Shown here in pieces: positions 42,791 to 63,770 of a DNA stretch of 64,000 nt. The DNA is taken from sequence record OR805293.1; one strand, given 5' to 3'. The position numbers and the translations under genes are program-made. Under the pieces are notes generated by a model that was not told the DNA's origin, made no database searches, and saw nothing but the letters and a program-made list of their open reading frames with translations. The stretch's first letter is position 1. Each line of letters starts with the position of its first letter.

Positions 42791-42930
42791 ATTTCATTTG
42801 TTATTGCAAATAAGAATTAGTCTTATTTGCGTTTGTAATTTCATTTGTTATTGCAAATAAGAATTAGTCTTATTTGCGTTTGCAACGAAAAAGAATATGC
42901 AAATAATAACTAATCTTATTTGCATTTGCA
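42791..42930. promoter_or_regulatory. cluster of three palindromic boxes (GCAAATAAGA-N5-TCTTATTTGC)
   Basis: 45-bp perfect direct repeat 42791-42835/42838-42882, third box at 42898-42924. Confidence 0.75.
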
Positions 42931-43095
42931 CTGCCTATTATATGGATTGGTAGCATACTTGGAAATGGATAGTAAATAAGTAGTTGATTTGTTTATAAAT
43001 TTTAATTCTATATCGTACTGATTGACCTTGCTATATATAGCTCGCGCGCGTATACAAGATGGTAAAAAATAATTTAAAAATATTTTAAAAAATGC

Positions 43096-43219
43096 TTGAC
43101 TTTCCATTACTACGACCTTAAAGTGCGAACTGTAGACGCAGTGTGTAGAGCGCTACATAGTAAGCAACGCAGAAAGTAAACAAAAAATGCTTGACGCAAT
43201 GCAAACTAGGCTCTACACT
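43096..43219 (+). promoter_or_regulatory. tandem sigma70 promoters
   Basis: TTGACT-17-TAAAGT (43096-43124) and TTGACG-17-TACACT (43191-43219), both preceded by AAAAAATGC. Confidence 0.75.
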
Positions 43220-43302
43220 GTATACAAGCTTAAGGGGTAAGTGCCCCGAAAGTGTAGTAAGTAAACAACATAATCCTTCCATCAGCTACAGAGGTATACA
43301 AC

Positions 43303-44007
43303 ATGTCCGTACATATCACTCGTCAACGTACCGACAAACAGCACGTCCTGGCACTGGCAATCAACGGCGTGGTCATCGGCCAGACTATGGCTACTTACAC
43401 CACCCCGAGCAAGCGCACCTGGTCGGCGACCGCTGAAGTCGAACTGGCAGACGGCACCGTCGTACAGTTCGAGCAGAAAGAAGTGTTCAGCGCGATCCGC
43501 ATCACCCGCGAAATCGAGCAGGCGCTCGACGGCAAGGAACTGGCGGCCAAGTACACCCCGGAACCGAAAGTTCCCGGGCAGAAGGGTCCGAAACCGCTCA
43601 CCGACGAAAGCCGGCTCAGCAACGCGATCGCGATCGTCAAGGCGGCCATCACCCACACCGGCTTCGACGAAGCTACCCTGGTGTTCGACGGGGTCGACAA
43701 GGCCAACTTCGAGCAGAACAGCACCTCCGTCGGCAACAAGCTGCGTCGCCTGGGCTTCGTCTTCGAACTCGGCGCCGGCAAGGCGAATAGCGGCAAGGGC
43801 TTCCTGATCAACCGCAAAGCGCAGGCCGAGGCAGAAGCTGCCGAACGCAAGGCCAAGCGCGATGCCGAGAAGAAGGAACGCGAAGAAAAAGCGGCGGCTG
43901 CCAAGCGCGAAGCTGACGAACGCAAGGCCAAGCGCGAAGCCGAACGCGCTGAAAAGGTCGCTGAAAAGAACGCAGCGATCGCCGGGGCAGCGCAGGAAAG
44001 CAAGTAA
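43303..44007 (+). CDS. very GC-rich protein with Ala/Lys/Glu/Arg-rich C-terminal tail; paralog of 62563..63018
   Basis: GAGGT RBS; host-like codons; shared NGVV.GQ...VQF.Q..VFSAIRI domain. Confidence 0.9.
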   Translation: MSVHITRQRTDKQHVLALAINGVVIGQTMATYTTPSKRTWSATAEVELADGTVVQFEQKEVFSAIRITREIEQALDGKELAAKYTPEPKVPGQKGPKPLTDESRLSNAIAIVKAAITHTGFDEATLVFDGVDKANFEQNSTSVGNKLRRLGFVFELGAGKANSGKGFLINRKAQAEAEAAERKAKRDAEKKEREEKAAAAKREADERKAKREAERAEKVAEKNAAIAGAAQESK

Positions 44008-44022
44008 TTGCCCAACTGCGCC

Positions 44023-44052
44023 GAAAGGGGAGCAAATTGCTCCCCTTTCTTC
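44023..44052 (+). terminator. intrinsic terminator
   Basis: GAAAGGGGAGCA-aat-TGCTCCCCTTTC. Confidence 0.85.
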
Positions 44053-44620
44053 ATGACCATATAATCTATATACTACTGTGTCTTTAACTATATTTTCTAT
44101 ATCAGCTAGTTTGTATGCAATAACTTGGTATTCTATGCCAGCGACACAATGCTGTTATATAGACATAATAACACGCGACGCTGATATTTTTATAACCTAT
44201 CCATTTTATAATAACATACTTGTATCTAAAATTATTTCTAATACAATACCTGTAGGAAGTTATGAACACTATATTAGAGATATGTCGTGGAATAAGAAAT
44301 GATCATATAACAGTCAATAATTTTACATATGACTACTATCTAGAGGTAAACACACCTGTGTTTTCTTTAATGATAATTATTCCAACAGTTCCTATATTAG
44401 ACAATACTTGCATTACTTTTATAAAAAAGTATTAATATGAATATATTCTTTATATCAAACAGTCTATCTAATATACTATATCATAAAGCTTATGATATAC
44501 ATATGATAGATATTAATATTAATAATTCTACTTCTATTTGGCTTACATATTCTTTCAATATTGCTAAGGTATCATTTAAATATATTATCTAATTCATTTT
44601 CTTATTGTATGAATTGTAAT

Positions 44621-44689
44621 TGCAAATTACTCTTATTTGTAATTGCATATAAACAATCAGTTGCTATTAAAAGTATTTGCTGTTAATAT
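44621..44689 (+). promoter_or_regulatory. palindromic box plus sigma70 promoter
   Basis: TGCAAATTACTCTTATTTG, then TTGCTA-17-TAATAT (44661-44689). Confidence 0.6.
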
Positions 44690-44973
44690 ATTATATAACA
44701 GTGCAATTGATATTTTAAAATACAGTGTGCAATACATCTTACATGTATTAAAATTTGTGTGTTACTTATTTTGCATTAATGATTAATATACCTCTCATAC
44801 AGTACAAAACTCATACTATAAACAATTTGTTCGGGCGATCGTTCTCAAAATGTATACAAGTGCGAGATGACAATCTAATTTTACTTGTTAGTTTTTATAT
44901 AGAAGGTTCTAAATATAGAAAATTTGTATATAACAACCAATGCCTTGCCAATGCCTTGAAGGGATTTTAGTAT

Positions 44974-45240
44974 ATGCAAACAACAATCGTTAATGCCCTA
45001 AAATCTATTAATGTAAAGTATTCGGATATATTTTACACAAATGGTAATTTGTGTAATACCGTTACAATACGAAATATTCGCAAAAATGGTAAATTAGATT
45101 CGGCAGAACAAATCAATGTAGAATCAGTTGTGAGCAATTATTTGATTCAAAAAGATTTAAATTTGCCCTTTTCTATTCAGTGGGCAAATAATGATTGTTG
45201 CGAAGAGTATACTACACTTATTCTCTTCTTCAGAAAATAG
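44974..45240 (+). CDS. hypothetical protein
   Basis: ORF track. Confidence 0.65.
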   Translation: MQTTIVNALKSINVKYSDIFYTNGNLCNTVTIRNIRKNGKLDSAEQINVESVVSNYLIQKDLNLPFSIQWANNDCCEEYTTLILFFRK

Positions 45241-45413
45241 TGTATGATTAGATTAAAAAGATATGTTCAATTGCATAGCATATACAGATTGTCTTACTAT
45301 GCGCACAACATACATTTTAGCAAAACAAAGAAGATAATGCTTTACGTAGGAAACGCAGGTCCCGTACCCGTAACATGACAGTATATAGCGTTAAAATGTG
45401 CATTTTTTGCACG

Positions 45414-45533
45414 ATTTTGCGGGGTATGCGTTACAAGCAATACACACATACTGCTTTTAAAATGCATGCTTACATGCGCTTTGTAGGGGGTTTAAAACAT
45501 GCTTAAATTAGTTACCACTGTGCTATACAACGT
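45414..45533. other. GA/TC-free tract
   Basis: 120 nt with no GA and no TC. Confidence 0.8.
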
Positions 45534-45711
45534 CTGTGTAGCTTCGTTGATAATGATTGTGTTTGTATGTGGTATAAATTTAGTAATGTATATAGATAAC
45601 AATACTGCCAATAATCCAGTTGTTATCTTTATTTCCCTTCTATCGGTTATTTGGGGTGTTGCGCGGTTAAGCTATATGTTTGTTACTATCCAATTTCAGT
45701 CCAAGAAATAA
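45499..45711 (+). CDS. small membrane protein
   Basis: AGGGGG RBS; two TM segments. Confidence 0.65.
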   Translation: MLKLVTTVLYNVCVASLIMIVFVCGINLVMYIDNNTANNPVVIFISLLSVIWGVARLSYMFVTIQFQSKK

Positions 45712-45726
45712 AAGTATTGGTAACAT

Positions 45727-46068
45727 ATGATAGATAAAAATGGAAATACAGAAGACTTTGATTTTGATAATGCATGCACTATAACTGATCTGTCTGTTCC
45801 TCTTCAGCAAAAAATACAATCATATAAATTAAATAAAATATTGGTTATGGTTGCAATCCTTAAATATTCGAATATAAAACAAGAAATTGGATGTTTCGCT
45901 ATCATATGGGATCATATAATAAAAATAACTGTTGAAGTAAAATGCAATCCGTATGCAGAAACACACATACTCATGCATGCGCATGTATTTTCTAATTCCG
46001 ATTCATGTACTCATAGTGTATTGCTGAATTACAGAAACAAATATTTACCCACTAATTATTATAATTAA
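45727..46068 (+). CDS. hypothetical protein
   Basis: ORF track. Confidence 0.55.
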   Translation: MIDKNGNTEDFDFDNACTITDLSVPLQQKIQSYKLNKILVMVAILKYSNIKQEIGCFAIIWDHIIKITVEVKCNPYAETHILMHAHVFSNSDSCTHSVLLNYRNKYLPTNYYN

Positions 46069-46069
46069 T

Positions 46070-46474
46070 ATGGAAGATATTCTTAAAATTGCCAAACTAA
46101 TCGGGTACGTAAACATACATGCAAATAAACATTTTCAGTATGGTTTTAACAAAGATATGGAACATGTATGTGTTAGTGCTAAGAGTAGGACAAGTATAAA
46201 GGGAATAAAATACCTTTATGTAGTAATGAATATATATTATATATATTGCCAGCAAGAAAGTGTTGCTGTTATATTAAACGAAGTAAACACTGATGAAATG
46301 CCTGTATTAGACAATCTTTATGCTAAGCTCAATGATTTAGTTACACATAAATCTGTTATAAAATTTAAATATACAGAAATAACACAAGAACAAATAGATT
46401 TGTTGAATAATAGTGAAAGATATATAGTATATTTTGACTCTAATTTAGAATACGGAATAGCTTCGTTTTATTAA
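46070..46474 (+). CDS. hypothetical protein
   Basis: ORF track. Confidence 0.65.
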   Translation: MEDILKIAKLIGYVNIHANKHFQYGFNKDMEHVCVSAKSRTSIKGIKYLYVVMNIYYIYCQQESVAVILNEVNTDEMPVLDNLYAKLNDLVTHKSVIKFKYTEITQEQIDLLNNSERYIVYFDSNLEYGIASFY

Positions 46475-46487
46475 TTTTGAGGAATAT

Positions 46488-46685
46488 ATGAAAAAACAAA
46501 CAGGATTTACAGATTGGCCATTGATTAGTTTGGGTACAATTATTATCTTGTGTGTATGGGTACTAATTCTACAATACACAGAAATAAATGTACTAGAAGA
46601 AAAATGTAACAAAGTAGGTGGTATTTTTAATAACACCGTTTGCATACGGTCAGATGCAGTTATTAATTTAGATAAGGTAAAATAA
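46488..46685 (+). CDS. small membrane-anchored protein
   Basis: GAGG RBS; one TM segment. Confidence 0.7.
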   Translation: MKKQTGFTDWPLISLGTIIILCVWVLILQYTEINVLEEKCNKVGGIFNNTVCIRSDAVINLDKVK

Positions 46686-46686
46686 A

Positions 46687-46944
46687 ATGCCAAAACTTTA
46701 CGTTAACAAAAAACATGATACCATTTATCTTCAATTAGATCATTTCTCATCTAATACTGTATCTCCAATTAATTATAACGAAGATGTAGAATATGTAATT
46801 GATAGGATCCGTAGTCTGCATAAATCCGGCTTCGGATTTAGTCATATGAATACTCTGCAAGAATATCTTACGGCAAGAACAGAACAGGATAAGAAGTTTA
46901 AGCTTAAAGTAGAAGACTTCGAAGTAGTATCATTTAAGATTTAA
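46687..46944 (+). CDS. hypothetical protein
   Basis: AAGGT RBS. Confidence 0.75.
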   Translation: MPKLYVNKKHDTIYLQLDHFSSNTVSPINYNEDVEYVIDRIRSLHKSGFGFSHMNTLQEYLTARTEQDKKFKLKVEDFEVVSFKI

Positions 46945-46965
46945 AATTATACATAATCAAAGTAT

Positions 46966-46994
46966 TTGACATTTGATGTGTATACTAGTATAAT
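46966..46994 (+). promoter_or_regulatory. consensus sigma70 promoter
   Basis: TTGACA-17-TATAAT. Confidence 0.9.
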
Positions 46995-47000
46995 TTGCTC

Positions 47001-47625
47001 ATGCTGTCGTAACAGCTACTTTGTTCCATTCACAAGCAGCTCTGTTCCATTATTGGATATTGGTAGTAGAAACTATCCCCATCGTGCCCACAGTATTGTT
47101 CTGTTAGAGACAGGTTAAAGCATACAAAAGTGGGTTATTTAAATTATGATTTTGGGTGCTGAAGTATAGTCGTTAGACAAGGATATGTCTAATGTTGCAA
47201 AGGACTATGCGAAACGTATTATATATCTTATCCGATATTAGATATGTAATAAAAGGATGAAGCTCTGGTAGAAACAGAGTGTAATTCTTGCTTGTATTTC
47301 GCACGAATATACAAAAGAATATACACACCAACTTCAGCATTGATGTAAATTTTCTAGCATAGGTATATAACATCGATGTTCCGGGATTCATTGGAAACAA
47401 TGAGAGAATGATGTAATCTGAGGAAAAAGGTCCCCGCCTCGTCCATATTACGAAATGGTTTTGAGTACTTATGCCCTCGTCCTATATTGGCATATGGGTT
47501 TTATATTTCTCCCGTAATTACGGGAGAATATAATTTCCTGAACCTACTTGGAAATGGACGCTTCTGATGTGCTTCGCACATCATCTAAGGGCCTTCACCC
47601 TTACCGCTAAGAGCAAGAGCAAAAG
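47001..47625 (+). ncRNA. candidate ~600-nt highly structured ncRNA (ncRNA-3)
   Basis: Consensus promoter; no + strand ORF >=60 aa; nested multibranch stems (see findings). Confidence 0.7.
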
Positions 47626-47860
47626 CAATATAATTACAAATAAGAATTAATTATTGTTTAGTTTTATCGTAATGAATATGAAGATAAAAACTAAACAATA
47701 ATTCACATGTAGCGTTAGCTACTGTGAATATCTACTATAGTATTAACCATATATGTATACAAGGGCATAATATGACTATTACTTGTTGACAATATGATAT
47801 GTGTGTTACACTGCATAAATCAAATGTACATTACAATGTTTTGATTATTAGGAACATACT

Positions 47861-48448: not shown

Positions 48449-48997
48449 ATGAACTACAAAGCATTAGAAGTATTTTATTTCTTTCTAGAACATTACAAGG
48501 TAAATCCAGTAGCCGATTTGGAATTTAAATTCGAACCCTCGGGTAGTGATGATCAATCTAAGCGCAAGTCATCACTGTCGTTTGTTAAACGCATTGGTGT
48601 TCTTACTCCTTCATTTAACGAATTATACGAAGTTCAGAATCGATTCATGACAGATCTTCGAGAAATGAATGTAGTATATAAGATAGGATTTAATTATAAT
48701 GCATTCAACGTATTAGCACCTTTGTATGCAAGATATGAAAAGAATGTAAAAGAATTTCGTCGACTTTTAAAGAAATACTCAAATTTCAACGAAGTAACAG
48801 AATATTACAAAAAAGCCAACAACATGTTACCGGACAATGTATACGAAACAATGAAGGAAGATTTTTCATTGTTTAACGACGTTACTACAAAGAGGTTATC
48901 TGAAATAAAACTTTGTTATCCTAATTGGCAAGTATGGGATTCTGAACATCCCAACTGGGAAACAATAAATCAACTTTATAAGAATGCAAAGAAATAA
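48449..48997 (+). CDS. hypothetical protein
   Basis: 182 aa. Confidence 0.8.
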   Translation: MNYKALEVFYFFLEHYKVNPVADLEFKFEPSGSDDQSKRKSSLSFVKRIGVLTPSFNELYEVQNRFMTDLREMNVVYKIGFNYNAFNVLAPLYARYEKNVKEFRRLLKKYSNFNEVTEYYKKANNMLPDNVYETMKEDFSLFNDVTTKRLSEIKLCYPNWQVWDSEHPNWETINQLYKNAKK

Positions 48998-49006: not shown

Positions 49007-49117
49007 AGAAAGGGAATTATAATTCCCTTTCTTTTTGGATCTATATTAGCAAATGCTAATTAATCTTATTTGCACAAATTTAATCCTATTGTGTTTTCTA
49101 TTTTGAAGTGCTACATT
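49007..49117 (+). promoter_or_regulatory. terminator + palindromic box + promoter module
   Basis: Hairpin 49007-49036; box 49049-49075; TTGTGT-17-TACATT (49089-49117) with TG. Confidence 0.65.
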
Positions 49118-49155: not shown

Positions 49156-49704
49156 ATGTGGGATATCAAAGAAGGGGATGATATCGAAGTCGAAGCAGTT
49201 ATGGATGAACGAAGCTATGAGTGGACCGGCAAGTTACGTATCATTCAGTATCGGACCCTTCAATCAGCTCAGTGGCGTGTTATTATCAATATAGTAGAAT
49301 TTTGGAGTCATTCTACTGAAAGTATACTGAACGAACTTGGTATAGAAGCTAAACACATCACTAAAGGATATGCTACACTTAGTATGGTTCGTTTCCCGGA
49401 TGTTGATTACCTATTTAGTGTAACACCCGATAATGCAGATTATGTAACTGTTAACCACAGTGCAGTAGATATTTCTGACAGTTGGTTTGTTGCAAAAAAC
49501 ATAAAAGCAGTTATGTATCATTTGGGATCTGAAATTCAGCTCACTCCGTGGTTTGTGCGTAAAGATAGTAGTGAGTCAAATTTCAATTGTATTGATCGAT
49601 TAGTAGCTCTAGTGAAAGAGAATACTGATGTTGACACGTATCAGTACATTAAAGTAGGTTGTCCTGAGGACAAGTCATTTTACTTTGCGTGGATAGACAA
49701 ATAA
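49156..49704 (+). CDS. hypothetical protein
   Basis: AGGAG RBS, ATG 49156. Confidence 0.75.
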   Translation: MWDIKEGDDIEVEAVMDERSYEWTGKLRIIQYRTLQSAQWRVIINIVEFWSHSTESILNELGIEAKHITKGYATLSMVRFPDVDYLFSVTPDNADYVTVNHSAVDISDSWFVAKNIKAVMYHLGSEIQLTPWFVRKDSSESNFNCIDRLVALVKENTDVDTYQYIKVGCPEDKSFYFAWIDK

Positions 49705-49830
49705 TTCGTTTGCTATACGTACTAATACGTTGTATACTGTTAGTACGTATAGTAGAAGTAACATATAACGTTTTGAGTTAAGGGAACCATAACATAAAAA
49801 AGAATTTGAATTGAGGTGCCCTACGAGTAG

Positions 49831-50325
49831 GTGTTCGAGATGGAGCAAATAGTGAATATGCGAGAAGTGACATTTCTTTCCGCAGTGGATGCCAGCAAGA
49901 TCGAGACGCCGAGCAACGTCATCAGCATCGGCAGCAAGGGTGATTGGTATGCCTTTGCCTGCGATCACAAGCGCGTTCTGCGGCTGGAGTTTGATGACGT
50001 AGACGGATACGTGGGAAGCGATGGCTTTCGAGTGTTCAGCCACATTGACGCCAAGCAGATCCACGACTTCGTGAACGAGTGTGGTGATGAACCGATCATT
50101 GTTCACTGCCAAGCAGGCATGAGCCGATCCGCTGCGGTTGCCAAGTTCCTAGCTGACAAGCGCGGCTACACCTTGAACCTGTCGAAGCCTTGCTTAGGCA
50201 CTACACAATTCTACAACCGCCACGTCTACGGAACGTTGAACCTCAACAACGCCGAAAGCATGAGCGCCTATTACGCAGAGATGGAGCTAGCCGACCGGAC
50301 GCGTGGCCATCCAAAGGAGTCCTGA
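49831..50325 (+). CDS. protein-tyrosine/dual-specificity phosphatase-like protein
   Basis: Active-site CX5R motif IIVHCQAGMSRSAAVA; upstream LEFDD acid loop. Confidence 0.88.
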   Translation: MFEMEQIVNMREVTFLSAVDASKIETPSNVISIGSKGDWYAFACDHKRVLRLEFDDVDGYVGSDGFRVFSHIDAKQIHDFVNECGDEPIIVHCQAGMSRSAAVAKFLADKRGYTLNLSKPCLGTTQFYNRHVYGTLNLNNAESMSAYYAEMELADRTRGHPKES

Positions 50326-50327
50326 TC

Positions 50328-50627
50328 ATGCCTGACATGAGAGAAGAGTTTGAAGCCGCAATCTTTGCGGAAGTGAATGAACAGCGGGCTGCTGAAGGTG
50401 AATTTGTCCTTCAGCATCCAGAAGGGCTATTTGCCCGCGATGACGATGGCTCCTACTTGATCCGTTGGGTCAAGAGCGCATGGTGGGCCTGGCAAGCCAG
50501 CCGCGCAGCTCTGAGAGTGGAGTTGCCGAAACCTCACCCTGCATTTGAGTACGCACCTAGAGCCAAGGTTTTCAATATAACTGACGTTGAGGTAGCCCTC
50601 CAGCAAGCCGGAATCGAGGTGAAGTGA
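50328..50627 (+). CDS. hypothetical protein, temperate-phage-like
   Basis: AAGGAG RBS, ATG 50328; MREEFEA...AWWAWQASRAAL pattern. Confidence 0.75.
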   Translation: MPDMREEFEAAIFAEVNEQRAAEGEFVLQHPEGLFARDDDGSYLIRWVKSAWWAWQASRAALRVELPKPHPAFEYAPRAKVFNITDVEVALQQAGIEVK

Positions 50628-50774
50628 ATGAGAACGCCCATCTTCATCGGCGGATCAATTGGCATAGGAATCGCCTATCTGATGAATCCTGAATATCCCG
50701 CTATCGCGCTTGCAATGGTGTTTAGCGCGGGTACCTCATTGTTCATTCACTATCTATCTGAGGTATGGCCATGA
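50628..50774 (+). CDS. small membrane protein (48 aa, not in ORF track)
   Basis: GAGGT RBS; coupled at both ends; two hydrophobic segments. Confidence 0.55.
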   Translation: MRTPIFIGGSIGIGIAYLMNPEYPAIALAMVFSAGTSLFIHYLSEVWP

Positions 50775-50845
50775 CCGACCACGCAGAGCTGCGGAGGCTG
50801 GCTAAAGAAGTGATCCGAATTGAACGAAATGAGGATGCAGCATGA
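50771..50845 (+). pseudogene. 24-aa Ead/Ea22-like N-terminal remnant
   Basis: MTDHAELRRLAKEV...; ATGA-coupled on both sides. Confidence 0.45.
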
Positions 50846-51378
50846 GCATTGACTGGACCAAGGCACCAGAGGGTGCGACGCACTACCAACCGGAATCACG
50901 CGGCTTCCATGCGGCATGGTTCCGACTTCAAGGGGGGAAGGCTCGCGAAATGTGGGTCGTGAGACCCAGCCGCGCGCTTGAGCACATCATCGATCCGACT
51001 GTCTTCGACGAGAGCATGCAGAACCTGATCGCCCGCCCCGTAGAACCTGCCACCTGGAACGGCCAGGGCCTGCCGCCGGTTGGCCTGATGGTGGAGTGGA
51101 AGGCAGGCCTTGATCACGACTGGCAGCGCGTAACCGTGCTTGCCTACGCCAATGGCGACGCGTGGTTTCAGCCCGAGGATGGCCCGTCTTTCATCGTCGG
51201 CAACCCGGCAAACTTCAGGCGTATCCGCACCCCCGAGCAGTTGGCCGCCGAGGAGCGGGAAAAGGCGATTAATCAGATGATTTCTGATGCTGGATACGTA
51301 GATCCGAAGATTGGCACATTTGTGGCTATGCGCAATCTCTACGACGCCGGCTACCGGCGCCGGGAGGAAGGGAAATGA
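50842..51378 (+). CDS. hypothetical phage protein
   Basis: MSIDWTKAPEGATHY; W.G.GLPPVG; LYDAGYR patterns. Confidence 0.8.
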   Translation: MSIDWTKAPEGATHYQPESRGFHAAWFRLQGGKAREMWVVRPSRALEHIIDPTVFDESMQNLIARPVEPATWNGQGLPPVGLMVEWKAGLDHDWQRVTVLAYANGDAWFQPEDGPSFIVGNPANFRRIRTPEQLAAEEREKAINQMISDAGYVDPKIGTFVAMRNLYDAGYRRREEGK

Positions 51379-51641
51379 GCAGACTGACAGCTGAGCAATC
51401 CCGTGACATAGCGCGAGCGAAAGACGATGTCGATACTATCCTCAACGACATCGCCAAATCAGCCGCAGAAGGAAAGTACGTGTACACTACCCGCGCCTAT
51501 GGGTTCGGCACAGGCGGCGGACGGCGCAGCGACGCGATCCTCAAAGTGTTGCGTAGCCTCGGCTACGACTGTGCGGTGCATGCTGAGGGACGCCAGTCTG
51601 TTGACCTGTGGCTTGAAGTGAAATGGGGAGACAAGCCATGA
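51375..51641 (+). CDS. hypothetical protein
   Basis: ATGA-coupled; GGAAGG RBS. Confidence 0.75.
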   Translation: MSRLTAEQSRDIARAKDDVDTILNDIAKSAAEGKYVYTTRAYGFGTGGGRRSDAILKVLRSLGYDCAVHAEGRQSVDLWLEVKWGDKP

Positions 51642-52057
51642 CTAACAACCCCGGAGATTCAAAAATGATCGTAGAAAACGCCAAGCAAGCTGCCGAAGAC
51701 TTCAAAACTTCCATGGCTAAGATTTTTCCGAATTACATCGCCAGGGCGTCGGTTTCCGATAACCTTGGTCCGGCGATGACAATTTCGTTTGCGAATGTCG
51801 GTTGCGCTTCCGAAGCCCCGAACAGCATTCTGATAAATGCGAGCGGTTACATGCGCTTTATGATGCATTTGTGTGACAATTGCGGGAATGTATTGCCAGA
51901 AGGTTCGCCGGTAGAAATTGAGCTGCTAATGTGGTCTATCCCCTGTCGTTCGGAAGTAATCAAGTTCCGCAAGATCAAGGGCAAGACACCAGCCGAAGCT
52001 ATGCAAAAGCTAGTCAAGTGGTTTGAAAAAAACGCCGAAGCTATCCGGGGTCTGTAA
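51638..52057 (+). CDS. hypothetical protein
   Basis: GGAG RBS, ATG 51638. Confidence 0.75.
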   Translation: MTNNPGDSKMIVENAKQAAEDFKTSMAKIFPNYIARASVSDNLGPAMTISFANVGCASEAPNSILINASGYMRFMMHLCDNCGNVLPEGSPVEIELLMWSIPCRSEVIKFRKIKGKTPAEAMQKLVKWFEKNAEAIRGL

Positions 52058-52081
52058 TGGTCTCCACGTAGGACACGCAGA

Positions 52082-52483
52082 ATGAACATTGTGTTGGACA
52101 AATTGCTGTTTGGCGGTTTCATCGACCAGCAGCGCAATGAACTTGCCCAGCAACAACTGAATCGGTTGTTTGCCAAGTACGGTGAGCCGAAGATTGGTAT
52201 CACACGGGCATGCTTTCTATCTAAGCATTACGTCCTGAAGTTCCCGATTAATGACAGGGGTGAGCGGTGCAACGATTGGGAAGGTAGCTGTTCCGGCAGC
52301 TACTTGGCACGCGGACGCTGGCTAGAAATCGGAGGCTTCATTTGTGTCATGCAAGAGCGTTTGGTTGAAGTGGATTGGAAGAACAACACCCATGCAAACT
52401 TTCCTGATTGGGTAGGCAGCATAGATTGTGGTCAAGTCGGCTACGATAAACATGGCGTTCTGAAAGCGTATGACTTCGGGTGA
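52082..52483 (+). CDS. compact protein-kinase-like protein
   Basis: GITRACF, YVLKFP (catalytic Lys), N.WE, MQERL, DCGQVG, terminal YDFG. Confidence 0.5.
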   Translation: MNIVLDKLLFGGFIDQQRNELAQQQLNRLFAKYGEPKIGITRACFLSKHYVLKFPINDRGERCNDWEGSCSGSYLARGRWLEIGGFICVMQERLVEVDWKNNTHANFPDWVGSIDCGQVGYDKHGVLKAYDFG

Positions 52484-52486
52484 AGC

Positions 52487-52678
52487 ATGACCATCAATTT
52501 GTTTGTCGTCAACATAAAGAACGAACCTATCCCAACCGACCACAAGTCGATACTCCGCTATCTTGGCCTTAGCCTGCACACGCAAGGCCGTCGTGTATCT
52601 GCCAAATTCAGCAGCGGTAAGTTGAAGCTGAACAACTACAACATCGAATTTTTTCACATGGCGGAGATGATTCCATGA
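52487..52678 (+). CDS. hypothetical protein
   Basis: ORF track; coupled to next gene. Confidence 0.65.
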   Translation: MTINLFVVNIKNEPIPTDHKSILRYLGLSLHTQGRRVSAKFSSGKLKLNNYNIEFFHMAEMIP

Positions 52679-53211
52679 CCGACACCAACAAAATAAAAAA
52701 GCTAGCAAAACTGGACGAGATCGACAGGCTCAGGGCAGAGCGAGACGCCGCCCTGGCCAGGGTCGTAGAGCTGGAACGCGGCAAGGTCTACGTCGAAGCC
52801 CGGCAATGCGACGAGTGCCAGCATGTCGGGATCAACGATTCCGCCACGGTCGTGGCTGCCTGCCACGAATGCGATTGGACCGGACCAGAGCCAGAAGAGG
52901 ATAAGTGCCCCGGTTGCCAGAGGGAGAATTGCATGGCCGCAGCCTGCCCGCAGTGTGGCGCCCGATATGTCCTTGTTGCCAGCGAAGAGATAGCCGCCCC
53001 TGTAGCCCAGGCTCAGCACAGCGTGCCAGAGGAATGGCACTGCATGCTAGCGAATCTTCAGTGGCACTACGAGCCGTATGACGATCACTACCACCGTGAC
53101 CAGGGCTTCTATTGCCCGGTCTGTGGCGGTGAGAAGGACGAAGGGCACAAGCAGGGTTGCAACCTGGCCAAGTTGATCGCCACTGCCGACCTCAAAGAAG
53201 ACAAGAAATAA
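52675..53211 (+). CDS. chimeric Ead/Ea22-like protein with Cys-rich zinc-binding repeats
   Basis: MTDTNK, DEIDRLRAERDAALARV, several CxxC motifs. Confidence 0.7.
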   Translation: MTDTNKIKKLAKLDEIDRLRAERDAALARVVELERGKVYVEARQCDECQHVGINDSATVVAACHECDWTGPEPEEDKCPGCQRENCMAAACPQCGARYVLVASEEIAAPVAQAQHSVPEEWHCMLANLQWHYEPYDDHYHRDQGFYCPVCGGEKDEGHKQGCNLAKLIATADLKEDKK

Positions 53212-53237
53212 AATTCTAAATTACTCGAACAAACATA

Positions 53238-53483
53238 ATGGGAGCAGCATACATGAGCCTCAAATATAACGGATATGTCTTTAACATCGGTATCCTTGGC
53301 CAAAACGAAGCTATCAGTGAATACGCCTATCCCACCGATGATCCCGAAAGTGATAAAAAGAAAGCTTTTTTGACTGCAATGGCAAAATTCGTCGAATCAG
53401 ATGATTTCGAGAAATTTACTAATCAAATGTATAACAATTTCTCGATTAATGTTCAAGCACTAGTTTCTACGTCTACAGAGTAA
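53238..53483 (+). CDS. hypothetical protein
   Basis: GGAG RBS before internal ATG. Confidence 0.65.
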   Translation: MGAAYMSLKYNGYVFNIGILGQNEAISEYAYPTDDPESDKKKAFLTAMAKFVESDDFEKFTNQMYNNFSINVQALVSTSTE

Positions 53484-53676
53484 ATTATCAGTATTGATGC
53501 TGATATAGACTATTACAGCTTCTTGTATCAGCATCAATACTGCAAAAAATAAAGAATAATTAATTCCAGTTCTTTGTTCCTGTATTAAGTGACAATAAAG
53601 AAGGCATAACTACTTTGTCTTTGATGCTAAGTAGTAATTATCTTATGATAACTACAAGAATATCAACGAAAAATAA

Positions 53677-53853: not shown

Positions 53854-54094
53854 CATTTGCAATATATCTATAAAAGAATATATTAGTAACACAGTTGTTA
53901 AATTGCAAACACTAATTAATCTTATTTGCATTTGCTATCTTGTATAATAGAAACGACTTCTAAACATGGATATGAGATGGAAAATTTAGATAGGATCTCT
54001 GTTACAAATTTTTGAGTTACAATACATAGTAGTTTTGCTATTATGTGTTTATAGAAGTTTAATAACAGAACTAAAACATAAAGGATTGTCTGTC

Positions 54095-54829: not shown

Positions 54830-54901
54830 GTATGTTACAAGTTAAACAAGATTAATTTGCATTTGCTATGTAATAATATTTTCTATTGAATTAAATATTA
54901 C

Positions 54902-55138
54902 ATGTGTTACTATATGCACAATGCTGTTAAACAAAGCGATAAATTAATAGCTATGGCAAATAAATTACATATCATCTGTGCAAAATGTGGTAGCACTCTT
55001 ATAAACATAAAAATACCAAAAGTATGTGCAGATGATCTATTGAATGTAGTATATTTTTCGTGCGAAAACTGTAAGGAACTTACAGGTATATACGAATGGG
55101 CAGAAACAAATAATCGCAAAGTAGTTGACGATAGGTAA
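54902..55138 (+). CDS. small zinc-ribbon protein
   Basis: CAKCG ... CENC. Confidence 0.6.
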   Translation: MCYYMHNAVKQSDKLIAMANKLHIICAKCGSTLINIKIPKVCADDLLNVVYFSCENCKELTGIYEWAETNNRKVVDDR

Positions 55139-55451: not shown

Positions 55452-55452
55452 A

Positions 55453-55746: not shown

Positions 55747-55749
55747 TAT

Positions 55750-55778
55750 AAAGGGGGAATAATTCCCCCTTTATTTTT
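55750..55778 (+). terminator. intrinsic terminator
   Basis: AAAGGGGGAAT/ATTCCCCCTTT. Confidence 0.85.
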
Positions 55779-55815
55779 CTTTTATAAACATAAATAATTC
55801 GCATTTGCACCGAAG

Positions 55816-57130: not shown

Positions 57131-57216
57131 CGGCTGTTAACTAGCAAACGCGAATTAATCTTATTTGCAATTTAAGAAAAATACCAGTTGACTGTAGCTT
57201 GTTAACATAGTACATT
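57101..57216 (+). promoter_or_regulatory. terminator + palindromic box + promoter module
   Basis: Hairpin 57101-57130; box 57144-57169; TTGACT-17-TACATT (57188-57216). Confidence 0.7.
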
Positions 57217-58117: not shown

Positions 58118-58132
58118 TATTCAGAGGATATT

Positions 58133-58336: not shown

Positions 58337-58346
58337 GGAAGTAGTA

Positions 58347-58866: not shown

Positions 58867-59148
58867 TAGTTCTATATTTTTTGATATATGCAAACGCAAA
58901 TAATTAGAATTTGCAGAACCTGTTACAAACTTTCTGTTTATATAAAATACAATCATGCTATAATAGTTTATAATAAAAATGTAAGCATATAGCACCAAAA
59001 GAACAAAGATGAAGTTCATTCTTTGTCTAAAGATTAAGTTTGCTGAGAATTTTGATAAGAAACTTCAACTGCTAGATATTATATCAATAGTGCATTTATC
59101 ATGCATTGAACAGAAAAGAAGTACTCTTTTATCTACGAGGAAAAGCAA

Positions 59149-59364
59149 ATGAAATACAAAATCATTCTTCAAAACCGTAGCAATGGTGTTGTCGCTGAAT
59201 TTTCGGTAGATAACGAAATTAACCCCGAGATCATGGATACTTCTATTATTGTTCATGAAGGGACATCGTATATGTTTACTGGCCAGCGCGGTTCTTACTA
59301 CGATATCCTTTATTTTAGTGAAATATATAAGACTATTAACACGACAGACTTGTCGTTGCTATAA
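59149..59364 (+). CDS. hypothetical protein
   Basis: GAGG RBS. Confidence 0.75.
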   Translation: MKYKIILQNRSNGVVAEFSVDNEINPEIMDTSIIVHEGTSYMFTGQRGSYYDILYFSEIYKTINTTDLSLL

Positions 59365-59437
59365 CAGAAAACGCTTTACAATAGCTCTAAATGTGCTATT
59401 ATGTAGTTGTACATAAAACAACGCAGGAGATTATATC

Positions 59438-59635
59438 ATGCGTAGCACACTCGGAGTAGAACATGCATCGAGAGAAATTCTTTCTGCATGGGTTGATGTA
59501 ATGCAGCAACTCAACTGTGAGCATTTCTATAGCGAACTGAAAGACAATGCAGTTCGCTTAGATTTACAGGAATATATGTATACTGAACGTCTCGTTCAGT
59601 ATTATACAGATCTTCCAGTCACTAATGCTGGTTGA
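59438..59635 (+). CDS. hypothetical protein
   Basis: AGGAG RBS. Confidence 0.75.
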   Translation: MRSTLGVEHASREILSAWVDVMQQLNCEHFYSELKDNAVRLDLQEYMYTERLVQYYTDLPVTNAG

Positions 59636-59665
59636 TGCCTTCGCCGGGCGTGAACTACATTTATT

Positions 59666-59777
59666 AGGAAAGGGGTTTTAAGCCCCTTTCCTTTTGATTG
59701 TTAAGTGTAAGTGCAAATTAATCTTATTTGCTTGTTACAATTTAGTTCTTGAATTCACACATAATAGTATGTATAGT
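59666..59777 (+). promoter_or_regulatory. terminator + palindromic box + promoter module
   Basis: Hairpin 59666-59695; box 59707-59731; TTGAAT-17-TATAGT (59749-59777). Confidence 0.7.
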
Positions 59778-59814
59778 TTTAATATATAAGATACCAACAT
59801 GCGAGGTTGTAAAA

Positions 59815-60267
59815 ATGAAACTTCATAATATGAATGGTAATATTTTTATTCGGTTTGAAGTAGATACTTCGTCGGATAATTTTGTAGAAAAAGTTTACGA
59901 AGAAATTATGCAGCTTCCTGCAAAATTGTATTTCGAGAAGATAGAACGTAGAACTTGGTTCTGTAGCTTTTACACAGGCTACGACGAATTGGTAGAATTC
60001 GTTAATGAAATAAAAGACAGAGTTAGTTCAGAAGGTGTTTTCTTTGACAGGCCATTGCAGCTAACTCTTATCAATTCGGGCGGGGTAGAAGTAAATATTT
60101 CCGATATAGAACCAGATCTTCACTATCTTTTTGATAACGATATTACAACTACAAAACTTATCTCTATGGAAGGATCGTGCAATATGGTAGATTTGCTCAT
60201 GTGCGAATGGGTACCTATTAACATTCGTACTTCTATTGCTAAGGCATTTACTGACAAATTTTTGTAA
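59815..60267 (+). CDS. hypothetical protein
   Basis: GAGGT RBS, ATG 59815. Confidence 0.75.
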   Translation: MKLHNMNGNIFIRFEVDTSSDNFVEKVYEEIMQLPAKLYFEKIERRTWFCSFYTGYDELVEFVNEIKDRVSSEGVFFDRPLQLTLINSGGVEVNISDIEPDLHYLFDNDITTTKLISMEGSCNMVDLLMCEWVPINIRTSIAKAFTDKFL

Positions 60268-60359
60268 TAAAATACCTGTTGACGCATATAGCAATATGCG
60301 CAATAATATGCACGAAAGCAAGAACAGATCCAAATAACCTTTTTATAAGAGATTATATT

Positions 60360-61007
60360 ATGTCTAAGTATCTTTCTTTTAGCGTAAACGTAGACATGGA
60401 CAACACTGGTCTGTTGAAATGGTTGCGTCCTACCACCGGTCGGTTGGATGGATTCGAAGAGAGTGTTAAAAACTTCGTTTCTTCTTTCCGCTCAGTCGAG
60501 TCGAGCCCTACGGTGTTTCAAGTTTACGATGACGATGATCAGCCGTTGCAAGTAAGCAACATGAGCTGCTTCTTCCGATACTTTCCGGTGTATGGTATGT
60601 GCCTTGCACCGGGTTCGATGGTCAGGGAACAATATCGTCGGGAGATCCTCGACTACACTACTGACGAGTTCTGTTCATTCAGTAACTACTTCAGTGACGG
60701 CAAGGCCATCCGCGGCGGGGCAGTCTTGTGGTGGGATGTAGAGAAAGACTTGGTATGGTCTGTTAGTCCCGAATTGATTCGCCTTGTATATGCCCGCTTG
60801 CAAAGTGATATGGACATCGGGTGGTATCATCTCGGGCAAGAAGTTATGGCTGTAGTTCCCCTTCGTTCGTATCCCAACGATGTTGCCCGATGGAAATATG
60901 TACAAGGTAATATCTGCGGCATCGACGATCAAGTGAGCATTCGCAGCAATGTCGACGGTCGAGTCACCCGGCTTAATTGGGAATACATCGTGACCCAAGG
61001 GGGATAA
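60360..61007 (+). CDS. GC-enriched hypothetical protein
   Basis: ATG 60360; GC rises sharply at the start codon. Confidence 0.8.
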   Translation: MSKYLSFSVNVDMDNTGLLKWLRPTTGRLDGFEESVKNFVSSFRSVESSPTVFQVYDDDDQPLQVSNMSCFFRYFPVYGMCLAPGSMVREQYRREILDYTTDEFCSFSNYFSDGKAIRGGAVLWWDVEKDLVWSVSPELIRLVYARLQSDMDIGWYHLGQEVMAVVPLRSYPNDVARWKYVQGNICGIDDQVSIRSNVDGRVTRLNWEYIVTQGG

Positions 61008-61008
61008 T

Positions 61009-61236
61009 ATGGGCGGTCTTGCTAATATAGTTGCATTCATAGCTTCTATTGTTGCAATTGTTACTGGAAATATCTGGTATTTTATCGCACTGTTGCTATG
61101 CACAGCATTTATGTCGCCCGAACGAAAAGGATCATTAATTGATGTATTTTCGGTCATTGTCGGGATTGGTGCTATATTTAACGGAGACATTGCATGGGGC
61201 ATAGTGTTCATAGCATTAGTGATAATAGTTAAATAG
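61009..61236 (+). CDS. small membrane protein
   Basis: Four short hydrophobic segments; GGGGGA RBS. Confidence 0.7.
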   Translation: MGGLANIVAFIASIVAIVTGNIWYFIALLLCTAFMSPERKGSLIDVFSVIVGIGAIFNGDIAWGIVFIALVIIVK

Positions 61237-61265
61237 AAAGGAAGGGGGTTTAACCCCTTCCTTTT
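61237..61265 (+). terminator. intrinsic terminator
   Basis: AAAGGAAGGGG/CCCCTTCCTTT. Confidence 0.85.
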
Positions 61266-61671
61266 ATTGTAGGTGTTAAATGTCATCAATTTTTTATCTT
61301 AGCAAATGGACAGAATACATAGTAATTTTAAACAATAAGAGAATAAGGTTAAGTACAGCGAAATATTCTATAGGATATGTATCACTAGAAACACCTCGTC
61401 GCACATTTTACTGGACACTTTTTAAATGAAATACAATAATCATATCTAATTAGCTACCTACATTTATATCAAAAACCATTCTATGAAATATATTTCCTAA
61501 ATCATATTACAAAAGTTATATTTGAATTTCGGATTCATATCTCAACCTTGCATTGCAATATAAAATGCGAATATGAGTGTGCTATATGTATTTGCATATG
61601 CATGTACATACGCATAAACGTATTAAGAAATACAATTTATTTTATCCTATACAATTATCTTTAATACCTAT

Positions 61672-62016
61672 ATGTTGTTTGATAATAAAAGTATAATAAG
61701 TAAAAGATATTATCCATTGTATAATGGTTTTAATATATTTCGCTGTAGTGTTGGATTTATATATTTTTCATATGATAAAATGTCATTTATTCACGACATA
61801 TTCATGCAAACCATTTCGTTGTTCCTTATGACGTTATTATTGTTTTTACTTATAACTCCGTTATATTATATAGGATTGAAAAATCCAGTCAATATAACTA
61901 CATTTGTTTCGTGTTTAATAATAACCATTCTTATAACAAGTTATTATTTTATGTCAGTTTTGACTTATATATTCTGTATTACTGTTCAGTCAATAATTTA
62001 TAAAAGAAAGAAATAA
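61672..62016 (+). CDS. hydrophobic hypothetical protein
   Basis: ORF track; very AT-rich. Confidence 0.4.
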   Translation: MLFDNKSIISKRYYPLYNGFNIFRCSVGFIYFSYDKMSFIHDIFMQTISLFLMTLLLFLLITPLYYIGLKNPVNITTFVSCLIITILITSYYFMSVLTYIFCITVQSIIYKRKK

Positions 62017-62028
62017 TTTAGTTTCTTT

Positions 62029-62094
62029 TTCATTATCTTTTTCATTATCTTTTTCATTTTCATTATCTTTTTCATTTTCTTTATCTTTTATCAT
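62029..62094 (+). repeat. 12-bp tandem repeat TTCATTATCTTT (3 exact copies plus variants)
   Basis: Copies at 62029, 62041, 62059; variant at 62071. Confidence 0.85.
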
Positions 62095-62213
62095 TGCAAA
62101 TACAAATAATAATTATTCTTATTTGCATTTAGTGATGTAAATAATTCTTATTTGTAATTGCGATTAATTCTTATTTGCTACAATAGATAGAATAAGAATA
62201 ATTCACATTTGCA
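62095..62213. promoter_or_regulatory. cluster of four palindromic boxes or half-boxes
   Basis: CAAATAATAAT-T-ATTCTTATTTG (62103-62125); TTCTTATTTG at ~62146 and ~62168; inverted AATAAGAAT at 62191. Confidence 0.7.
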
Positions 62214-62369
62214 ATGCCGCTAAAAGCGCTGTAAGCGCTGTATGTTGCGTAGTAATGCTAAGCAATGCATTAGTACAGCTACGCGCACAAACGCTGTTAT
62301 ATGCGCTTGTAGCGCGTTTTAGGGCCCATGCGCATGCGTACACCTGTAGCTTTACATAGCAAAATGCAG
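62204..62369. other. GA/TC-free tract
   Basis: 166 nt with no GA and no TC; GpC-rich. Confidence 0.85.
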
Positions 62370-62498
62370 AAAAGACGTCGTCTATTGACGTGCCTGTCTT
62401 AATAGAAATATACAATTGTACAATACCTGTGAAATCCTACACACTACAGACATGCAAACAAGCAATGTGCTTGCAAGCATAAAAGTTTTTAAAAAGTA

Positions 62499-62527
62499 GT
62501 AGACATTGTGTAGCATCCCTAGTAAGC
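62499..62527 (+). promoter_or_regulatory. sigma70-like promoter
   Basis: TAGACA-17-TAAGCT. Confidence 0.6.
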
Positions 62528-62562
62528 TACACACACATAAACAACACAACGGAGTACAAGCT

Positions 62563-63018
62563 ATGTCTAATGTAAGCATCCCTGCAGTAACGGTAGAGAA
62601 CATCGGCACCCTGCGCATTGTGCGCACCGCTAACAAGGAGGTCGGAAGTGTGCTCGACCTAAAAGTTAACGGGGTAGTAGTAGGGCAAGCTTTCCCGCTC
62701 TACAGCACAAAAACCCAGCGTAGCTGGAACGCAAGCATGCACGCTACCGTTAACGGTGTAGAGGTGCAGTTTGCACAGGAAGGCGTGTTCAGTGCAATCC
62801 GCATTGCACGGGCGTTCGAGGATGCAGTAAAGCATGCCGTTAGCAACGGCGAGCAAGGGCAACCCCTCCCCGCGCCGGCGGCGCAGTCCGATGCCCCGGC
62901 AACGGCAGAAGCGCAAGCAGAAGCCCCGGCGGCGCAGACCGAGGATGCGCCGGAGACCCTGGCAGCCGAAGCTAAGCCCGCCCGCAAAGGCGGCAGCAAA
63001 GGCGGCAGCAAAAAGTAA
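62563..63018 (+). CDS. very GC-rich protein with Ala/Pro linker and basic tail; paralog of 43303..44007
   Basis: GGAG RBS, ATG 62563; NGVVVGQ...VQFAQEGVFSAIRI; ends KPARKGGSKGGSKK. Confidence 0.88.
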   Translation: MSNVSIPAVTVENIGTLRIVRTANKEVGSVLDLKVNGVVVGQAFPLYSTKTQRSWNASMHATVNGVEVQFAQEGVFSAIRIARAFEDAVKHAVSNGEQGQPLPAPAAQSDAPATAEAQAEAPAAQTEDAPETLAAEAKPARKGGSKGGSKK

Positions 63019-63172
63019 GCGCTGCTAACACAGGAAAGGGGCAACTGCCCCTTTCCTTTTATGTCCTAGTTGTAAATGCAAATTAATCTTATTTGCATTT
63101 GCACAAGTCATTCTCCTGTTGCATTACTGCTTTAAGATGTTAGTATATATGTAGCTATACGGAGTAATTGCT

Positions 63173-63324
63173 ATGAAGCGCAAGTACCTAAAGGCACAGT
63201 TCGAGCATGTTAGTGCCAAGCTCGCCTGCAGCGTATGTTCGAAGAACTCGGTTGCAAGCCCGATGCTTGCTCTGCTAGCATGTACGAGGATAAGACGCAC
63301 ATCACATTAGCCTGGAGCAAGTAA
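63173..63324 (+). pseudogene. small gene apparently carrying a 1-nt frameshift
   Basis: GGAG RBS plus MKRKYLKAQFEHVSAKL, then a second frame QRMFEELGCKPD...AWSK* abutting the next ATG. Confidence 0.45.
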
Positions 63325-63615
63325 ATGGATATGTCGATTGTGAACAAGCGCTTCGAGAAAGAACTAGCGCTGTTTAATGTCGAAGTTCTCGGTAAGCGCA
63401 CAGTGAATCATATAACGAAACCGAACATCGAAGTTTCGTTCAAACTAAAGGGTCATACTACTGAAGAAGAGATGACCACTGTTACTCAGCTCGCACGTCC
63501 CATTATGGAGTATGTAAGCGGACGTAGGGTGGTCTGGGCACACACCAGTCTTTGGCGTGCAATGAAAGACGACCTCGAAGTAGCAGTGCTGACAATGAAG
63601 TTATCCAAACAATAA
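63325..63615 (+). CDS. hypothetical protein
   Basis: GGAG RBS; ends before terminator. Confidence 0.75.
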   Translation: MDMSIVNKRFEKELALFNVEVLGKRTVNHITKPNIEVSFKLKGHTTEEEMTTVTQLARPIMEYVSGRRVVWAHTSLWRAMKDDLEVAVLTMKLSKQ

Positions 63616-63770
63616 GAGATAGGGGCAACTGCCCCTTTCCTTTTATGTCCTAGTTGTAAACGCAAATTAATCTTATTTGCATTTGCACAAGTCAATCTCC
63701 TGTTGCATTACTGCGGTAAGATGTTAGTATGTGTTTAGCAGTAACACATAACTAGCAGGAGCAATAGACA

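Follow-up and report, generated by a model that had tools for sequence, protein, structure and literature searches.

What does a short, repeated, near-palindromic box do in the early region of a jumbo phage? The window analysed here is a stretch of 64,000 nt, which is 100% identical to bases 124001–188000 of Pseudomonas phage Deifobo (OR805293.1), a PA5oct-like jumbo myovirus (Wroclawvirus) that infects P. aeruginosa and has a 288 kb genome of roughly 30% GC. From 42.8 kb onwards this window contains copies of a 27-bp box that a first-pass annotation, made from the letters alone, had noticed and discussed as a possible iron-responsive element. We consider it somewhat better than an even bet (roughly 55%) that the box is the conserved upstream element of shuffle-prone composite cassettes resembling PeSLs, the stem-loop/sigma70-promoter cassettes of T4-type phages, and that it is a putative site for a dimeric protein on early promoters used by the host RNA polymerase. 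Positions refer to the window unless stated otherwise.

The 27-bp near-palindromic box is genuine, and its copies lie where they had been placed. The 13-mer AATCTTATTTGCA occurs exactly six times in the window, on the plus strand only, and 24 times if up to two mismatches are allowed (7.4 expected), a number that was reached in none of 100 shuffles. An iterated 33-nt matrix detected 19 window sites above 21 bits, spanning 42806 to 63656, while the best score in 50 shuffles was 20.5; since this matrix was trained on the same sites that it scores, the exact-word counts are the cleaner test. When the matrix was applied to the whole Deifobo genome in seven pieces, 22 sites above 21 bits were found in the zone from 42.8 to 70.6 kb and none in the other 260 kb, which agrees with the earlier statement that there are no copies before 42.8 kb. 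Copies that had been called weak (54845 and 55790) score 28.0 and 22.4 bits. The zone also holds 26 of the 30 genomic occurrences of the 9-mer TCTTATTTG and 11 of the 13 occurrences of an invariant frame, GCAAA-N15-TTTGC. The box is previously undescribed: no description was found in the PA5oct and Wroclawvirus papers (the supplementary promoter tables of PA5oct lay outside the scope), and the PA5oct promoter analysis, in the main text and preprint apart from the promoter alignment tables, does not mention an upstream element.

The claim that the box is a palindrome of about 27 bp holds for the best copies (42805 and 42852), for which a 13-N-13 form fits. In general the palindrome is imperfect, and the GCAAA-N15-TTTGC frame surrounds an asymmetric core. 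One half of the box is usually the core TAATCTTATTTGCA or AATTCTTATTTGCA, and the other half is a variant of the ATT(T/C)GC(A/G)TTTGCA type. Frame spacings of 9 and 21 are enriched too, because TTTGCA is often doubled. The well-conserved half had been described as having the same orientation; it mostly faces the promoter, but is promoter-distal at 54834, at 67263 and in two modules of a related contig (L125, see below). Likewise, the supposedly inverted copy at 47636 does have its core on the minus strand, but is a half site only. Folding of single strands gave stems in varying register: the copy at 42805 forms a stem of 10 bp closed by a 5-nt loop, the one at 63071 a stem of 13 bp closed by a 7-nt loop, and those at 57143 and 49048 are paired at their ends only (z −0.5 and −1.2). 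In this comparison, aimed at a hairpin or cruciform, base pairing was not preserved across copies. Conservation of the sequence without conserved pairing favours a double-stranded protein site over a hairpin.

The box zone extends beyond the window end to about 70.6 kb and corresponds to Deifobo 166.8–194.7 kb or, in PA5oct coordinates, to about 8.6–36.4 kb. With 28 kb it makes up 9.7% of the genome and lies within the direct terminal repeat of about 39 kb, the left end of which (PA5oct position 1) is at 34375. PA5oct, MIJ3, Paride, Callisto and others are 96–97% identical to Deifobo over this region. According to the PA5oct paper, the phage needs the host RNA polymerase, as judged with rifampicin, its promoters are sigma70-like, and the genes highly transcribed early (5 min) are gp34–gp105 of the terminal repeat (PA5oct about 7.2–39 kb). 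The box zone coincides with this early, highly transcribed block. The first 8 kb of the terminal repeat (34.4–42.3 kb) contain no boxes and no G+C-rich terminators, and between 44 and 64 kb we counted 33 terminator-like sites (13.9 expected).

Isolated copies of the box show a constant order of elements: a GGGG..CCCC terminator, 8–15 nt, the box, 15–22 nt, a sigma70-like −35 element and a TG-extended −10 element. Each terminator has a G/C stem of the AGGAAAGGGG..CCCCTTTCCT type and then a T run (at 49007, 55748, 59666, 63032 and 63621), so that the copies at 49049, 55783, 59707, 63072 and 63656 follow a terminator, as had been remarked for isolated copies; the same applies to the copies at 64376 and 70582 beyond the window. 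The single copies in the window are the following.

44615–44641, plus strand: isolated box, 32 bits, with a predicted −35 element TTGCTA at 44661
47635–47647, core on the minus strand: half site only, two mismatches
49007–49117, plus strand: module with terminator (49007–49032), box (49048–49074) and predicted promoter with TG-extended −10 (49089–49117)
53904–53948, plus strand: box (53904–53930) abutting an extended −10 (TGTATAAT)
54841–54913, plus strand: weak box (54841–54867, 28.0 bits), core half promoter-distal, with predicted promoter (54886–54913)
55748–55809, plus strand: terminator (55748–55774), then weak box (55783–55809, 22.4 bits)
57143–57216, plus strand: box (57143–57169) and predicted promoter TTGACT-17-TACATT (57188–57216)
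58889–58964, plus strand: variant box (58889–58915) with ends kept and a different centre, and predicted promoter (58937–58964)
59666–59777, plus strand: module with terminator (59666–59692), box (59706–59732) and predicted promoter (59749–59777)
63032–63155, plus strand: module with terminator (63032–63057), box (63071–63097) plus an extra TTTGCA, and predicted promoter GTTGCA-17-TGTTAGTAT (63118–63146)
63618–63740, plus strand: second copy of this module with terminator (63621–63636), box (63655–63681) and predicted promoter (63702–63730)

The −35-like hexamer of the predicted promoters is found 15–22 nt past the last TTTGC and is followed by the TG-extended −10 after 16–18 nt. This distance of 15–22 nt was observed in 14 of 16 modules from Deifobo and its relatives, or in 8 of 10 when paralogous modules are counted once, while random anchors had only 18.5% of their promoter matches within this range (p about 4e-5). 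The box centre is located at about −60 to −70 relative to the predicted starts, and the conserved upstream position given in the first-pass annotation is supported by these numbers.

An AT-rich sequence directly upstream of the −35 element of early promoters could also act without any factor, as an UP-element-like surface for the alpha C-terminal domains of the host RNA polymerase. T4 early promoters have AT-rich upstream regions, and so do the PeSLs of T4-type phages. The box, however, extends from about −78 to −50 and is thus mostly upstream of the UP window (−59 to −38), and its conserved G/C positions and two-fold frame do not resemble the A/T-tract consensus of UP elements. Since the clusters described below and the promoter-remote copies would also be left unexplained, we regard this as quite improbable.

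The position of the box also bears on the idea that host Fur binds here, either to control an iron-responsive regulon or to be titrated by clusters of decoy sites. Like the Fur box (GATAATGATAATCATTATC), the Deifobo box is an AT-rich palindrome, and its perfect palindromic version has the AAT-N-ATT centre of the Fur 7-1-7 box; the copy at 62105 matches 14 of 19 positions. A typical copy matches 10–12 of 19 positions, though, which is close to background, as the mean for AT-rich stretches of this phage is 10.5, with 14% of them reaching 12. The Fur consensus does not include the informative positions of the box (TTTGCA ends, TCTTA), and most copies are upstream of the promoter and not over it, which is the wrong place for a repressor; only the copy at 53905 abuts a −10 element. 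The ten proteins tested that are encoded downstream of boxes are ORFan products without an informative family: nine are without any PHROG match, the only PHROG family matched by the tenth is of unknown function, the sole Pfam match was under the gathering cut-off, and nothing iron-related was found in Pfam or PHROG. In addition, the box has been kept in contigs that come from unrelated environmental samples. The Fur proposal therefore appears extremely unlikely and the iron regulon was not confirmed.

At two sites the boxes are clustered. Both clusters are built alike and consist of a terminator, a 12-bp tandem repeat, three to four boxes and a leader of 350–370 bp with promoter-like sites, followed by a high-GC gene.

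42742–42786, plus strand: 12-bp tandem repeat CTTATTCATTTC, 3.8 copies, just before cluster 1
42805–42924, plus strand: cluster 1, with 27-mers at 42805–42831, 42852–42878 and 42898–42924, the first two being the most nearly palindromic
43303–44007, plus strand: high-GC gene (234 aa) behind cluster 1 and a leader of about 370 bp with two TTGAC promoter-like sites
62024–62095, plus strand: 12-bp tandem repeat TCTTTTTCATTA, 5.9 copies, just before cluster 2
62095–62213, plus strand: cluster 2, with four overlapping or adjacent boxes in both orientations
62563–63018, plus strand: high-GC gene (151 aa) behind cluster 2 and a leader of about 350 bp

The attention drawn earlier to the 43303 and 62563 proteins proved useful: they are paralogs (48% identity over 61 aa, E 2e-16), each encoded behind a box cluster. 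A third copy of the family is located past the window end (L002 29146–29583), behind a single partial box. Mass spectrometry of PA5oct virions had detected EST35_0038, which is orthologous to the 234-aa protein. Among 1.8 billion proteins the family has 14 representatives; in each, a linker rich in Pro, Ala and Glu joins a conserved N-terminal domain (about 90 aa) to a short basic tail (KGGSKGGSKK, KGKKGSKK, and one tail of GRP type). AlphaFold, with the 14 sequences, predicted five strands and one helix with a predicted local distance difference test score (pLDDT) of about 94 for residues 10–100. Foldseek with this confident model gave no PDB match (best E 0.3) and only paralogs among the viral models of BFVD; a shallow family model had no PDB match either. 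Pfam and PHROGs returned nothing above threshold for the paralogs, and a word-based protein search with the 234-aa protein retrieved only the PA5oct ortholog.

Some further observations concern these loci. The Deifobo record has antisense open reading frames (ORFs) (Deiofobo_0305, 0366/0367 and 0391) on the minus strand at 43395–44060, 62382–63044 and L002 29047–29469. As the high-GC genes on the plus strand have support from PA5oct mass spectrometry and homologs elsewhere, the antisense ORFs are probably annotation errors. Upstream of cluster 1, a TTTGCAT tandem (3.6 copies, 42267–42293) precedes 42471–42706, the equivalent of PA5oct ncRNA001, an abundant ORF-less transcript that ends at the terminator just before the cluster and has no Rfam match. 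All lineages seen have a second conserved element containing CAATTGTACA (core palindrome TACAATTGTA) 98–156 nt ahead of the start codons of their short family genes (62413–62422, L002 29048, L125 3606, L127 1189, L155 1531, L156 227); the 43303 gene has no such element upstream. It may serve the family as a promoter or operator of its own. An annotated "DNA binding protein" (L002 29812–30228) was considered as binder of the box and rejected: it matches PHROG 624 only, has no Pfam match, and nothing links it to the box.

Relatives of this region were reached by tracing family members to metagenome contigs. The same box is present on L125 and L155 (one sample), L158 and L126 (one study) and L127, all with 47–51% GC. 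It follows terminators and precedes promoters in L125 (4–30, 470–498), L155 (1–15) and L158 (3625, 4344, 4930, 5886). A cluster is found upstream of the family gene in L125 (3181–3300), L158 (2722–2820) and L127 (286–430) and, in degenerate form, in L126 (206–330); in L125 and L127 it is preceded by a pyrimidine-rich repeat. Alignment of Deifobo and L125 yielded almost nothing but boxes and terminators, with 92–96% identity over 25–29 bp. L158 contains genes 75–86% identical to those of Deifobo and a module with the same spacing as the 63072 module. No cluster was present upstream of the family gene P0004 of L155, and the contigs with more distant family members (L280/L281, L282–284, L156) have no box above 14 bits. 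L280 carries a TGCAAAT..ATTTGCA palindrome with a different spacer, together with TTTGCAT repeats; a sequence similar to the TTTGCAT tandem of Deifobo is located upstream of its family gene.

Pattern searches added little to these contigs. Exact-pattern scans of IMG/VR resulted in single chance matches for a 14-mer and in unrelated coding repeats for a degenerate 19-nt pattern. A metagenome scan for two cores 10–40 nt apart returned mostly unrelated tandem repeats; none of 120 loci codes for a family member, and only L267 looks related. A C-rich element of the tgtctcccccgcccc type stands after a box or box array in three contexts that are unrelated to each other (L002 27320–27360, equivalent to about 67320 of the window; L125 3330–3350; L267 395–425), in L267 between a long iteron-like array and an A-rich stretch.

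The clusters in front of family genes raise the question whether the family itself, with its beta domain and basic tail, binds the boxes, the clusters being autoregulatory operators. Six loci on five sequences have a family gene preceded by a box or cluster (three in Deifobo, and L125, L127 and L158; the L126 cluster is degenerate), the tails are basic, and the PA5oct ortholog is in the virion although it is encoded in the early region. On the other hand, the confident model of residues 10–100 (pLDDT about 94) matches no PDB fold and no DNA-binding family, the family genes of L155 and L280/L281 lack an upstream cluster, L280–L284 and L156 lack boxes above 14 bits, and boxes are common throughout these early regions, so that co-occurrence is weak evidence. 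We therefore consider family members unlikely binders. A more specific version, in which a virion-packaged family member arrives with the DNA, binds the boxes and switches the early promoters of the terminal repeat on or later off, with the clusters before the family's own genes as autoregulatory operators, is less probable still. If it were true, early transcription by the host polymerase would be driven by a sequence-specific transcription factor that the phage itself supplies in the capsid.

The clusters could also be replication or partition sites of the iteron type, with the single boxes as secondary sites of the same protein. The combination of a 12-bp tandem repeat with repeated boxes would fit, as would the succession of iteron-like array, C-rich element and A-rich stretch in L267, the C-rich element also being present after the box at 67263 and in L125. 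This does not account for the about 20 single copies, one per intergenic region, beside promoters, and no recognisable initiator or ParB-like gene is nearby, the replication genes being elsewhere. Such a function is very unlikely in our opinion.

The modules are also connected to differences in gene content between close relatives. One case is the following.

63155–63618, plus strand: gene cassette in Deifobo, with no counterpart in PA5oct or Paride and a rearranged one in Callisto

On either side of this cassette lies a direct copy of the whole module (63032–63155 and 63618–63740). Modules of at least 120 bp are repeated at 92–97% identity, including these two and copies in Callisto and L158. 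Breakpoints of indels were located at boxes or within about 50 bp of them (63146/63155–63618, 64401, 65110, 65633/65708, 70626), so that copies flank indels between close relatives, and the ORFan-rich box region holds most of the rearrangements between relatives. A high-GC block at 49.8–53.7 kb also differs among Deifobo, PA5oct, Paride and Callisto; its breakpoints are not at boxes.

In T4-type phages, PeSLs are stem-loop/sigma70-promoter cassettes with an AT-rich part upstream of the −35 element; they are dense in ORFan-rich regions and recombine, thereby inserting, deleting and swapping genes (PMC2839356, PMC4122927). The Deifobo cassettes share with PeSLs (Arbiol, Comeau & Krisch 2010; Comeau et al. 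2014) their small size, a GGGG..CCCC terminator, which adjoins the box at five window modules, an AT-rich stretch and, as predicted here, a sigma70-like early promoter. They are likewise repeated in ORFan-rich plastic regions and flank gene cassettes whose presence varies between close relatives, as would be expected from homologous recombination between copies. Unlike in PeSLs, a specific near-palindrome of 27 bp, framed by GCAAA-N15-TTTGC at fixed spacing, occupies the upstream stretch and also forms clusters of three to four; the cassettes lie inside the terminal repeat (about 39 kb) of a Pseudomonas jumbo phage, and there is no sequence homology to the PeSLs of RB49 and phi1. The first-pass annotation had the position of the box as an upstream element right and missed this composite terminator–box–promoter cassette. 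T4 internal-protein loci, in which PeSL-like elements flank variable genes whose products are encapsidated and injected (cited in PMC2839356), also resemble the Deifobo arrangement in having a variable paralogous family with one member in the virion and repeated regulatory elements flanking it in an early region. The Deifobo family has no homology to T4 internal proteins and is known here from its genes and from virion detection in PA5oct.

Mobility alone might explain the box. As in a pure PeSL, it could be the best-kept part of a mobile terminator–promoter linker that provides homology for recombination and has no dedicated binder, and its copies would then stay alike because cassettes are duplicated, undergo gene conversion and spread horizontally. 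The repetition of whole modules of at least 120 bp at 92–97% identity, the indel breakpoints at modules and the finding that boxes are no better kept than their flanks among close relatives all speak for this. Yet the copies at 57144, 49049, 53905, 59707 and 44616 share the box alone and not the flanks, homology does not need a two-fold frame with a fixed N15, clusters of three to four boxes in both orientations are hard to account for, and the breakpoints of the 49.8–53.7 kb block are away from boxes. We consider this explanation possible but rather doubtful.

A site for a dimeric protein fits the two-fold frame with its fixed spacing, the place upstream of promoters, the clusters with both orientations, the conservation in divergent phages and the lack of conserved pairing. 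The box is thus probably a protein-binding site, the binding itself being inferred from these features. The earlier suggestion of sites for a phage-encoded activator or nucleoid protein fits this anatomy and is our leading idea. In the model that we favour, each cassette would consist of an intrinsic terminator with a G/C stem, the 27-bp box and a host sigma70-type promoter with TG-extended −10, and such cassettes would punctuate the ORFan-rich early region that PA5oct-like jumbo phages have in their long terminal repeat. Acting as double-stranded DNA, the box would offer a sequence-specific protein dimer two half sites, each of about 13 bp; bound about 60–70 bp upstream of the start, this protein would set output or timing of early promoters of the host RNA polymerase. 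We regard activation or recruitment as the more likely mode, because the −35 elements are weak and early expression is very high, with later shut-off of early promoters as the alternative. The binder could be a host factor, an immediate-early product encoded in the first 8 kb of the repeat, where boxes are absent, or a protein delivered by the virion. Whole modules of about 100–120 bp would double as homology for gaining, losing and swapping gene cassettes, a role in recombination that the cassette indels indicate.

Several findings weigh against this model. The class I sites of activators such as CRP are on one helical face with centres at about −61.5 and −71.5; the spread of −60 to −70 seen here has no obvious helical phase, and the distance from box end to the −35 element of the predicted promoters shows no clear 10–11 bp phasing. 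The box at 53905 has its centre at about −38, and the best-scoring predicted promoters are more than 100 nt downstream of the copies at 64376 and 65687. All promoters were called by consensus matching in AT-rich DNA, in which 31% of random anchors also have a match no more than 75 nt away, and many modules are paralogous and hence non-independent, so that the constant spacing may partly reflect inheritance. Mismatches among PA5oct, Paride and Callisto amount to 3.0% in boxes and 3.2% in flanks, relatives too similar to give this comparison power, and conservation across phages could be due to cassette mobility and not to constraint. Finally, the analysis turned up no candidate binder, and the associated family has no detectable DNA-binding fold.

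Known systems offer parallels for a dimeric-protein site of this kind. In phi29, the p4 dimer binds upstream of the late promoter A3, at an inverted repeat whose halves are 15 bp apart, and there contacts the alpha subunit of RNA polymerase; it activates at this promoter with a weak −35 and represses at other promoters. The Deifobo boxes are similar in being inverted repeats with a 15-bp spacer upstream of predicted promoters with a weak −35. They differ in sequence and number (about 25 versus a handful of p4 sites), and no p4-like protein was identified in Deifobo. The dispersed operators of P1 C1 and RK2 KorB, global regulators of mobile elements, are repressor sites with known binders, and there too one short operator serves many transcription units, some copies being promoter-adjacent and some distant; the Deifobo sites, in contrast, are confined to one 28-kb zone. 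Other candidates were compared by eye and rejected: the sigma54 promoter (no GG at −24), the T4 MotA box (wrong spacing to the −10), the TyrR/PhhR box (wrong spacing), Fis, IHF, Lrp and LacI-family operators. The RsaL operator of P. aeruginosa (TATGnAAnTTnCATA, a 15-bp consensus; PMC5314801) was also dismissed by eye, as only its ATTTGCAT half resembles the box and the TATG half is absent.

Other features of the window are listed here for completeness. Rfam detected 12 tRNAs and nothing else in the whole window; they form a cluster at 14757–18956 (Met x3, Leu x2, Ser x2, Asn, Thr, Arg, Pro and Gly), as reported for PA5oct. A repeat array with units of 39, 56 and 68 bp (33975–34340) is immediately left of the start of the terminal repeat at 34375. 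The equivalent stretch is labelled "CRISPR" in the Paride record; it looks more like terminal-repeat boundary or packaging repeats. Among the early-region genes, 46488–46685 and 48449–48997 have the PA5oct orthologs EST35_0048 and EST35_0051, which were found in virions by mass spectrometry. The early region hence codes for several particle-associated proteins, which might be ejected with the DNA. Islands of 45–55% GC are present at 43040–44050, 49700–53500 and 62215–63030, and 49838–50000 is 91–93% identical to the temperate Pseudomonas phages JBD44, JBD88b, Ab17 and Shamal. Together this suggests that Pseudomonas phages or hosts with GC-rich genomes contributed these genes.

Both a model role among jumbo phages and use in therapy have been proposed for PA5oct-like phages, and Paride, one of them, is reported to kill dormant cells. 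They have roughly 100 early ORFan genes, and a single conserved operator would give a handle on the regulator of these genes, make the early regulon definable from sequence alone and provide portable terminator–operator–promoter parts for Pseudomonas. Cassette mobility may explain how host-like high-GC genes get slotted into a genome of 30% GC. The Deifobo cassettes would carry the PeSL idea of mobile regulatory cassettes past the T4-type phages and into the terminal repeat of a jumbo phage.

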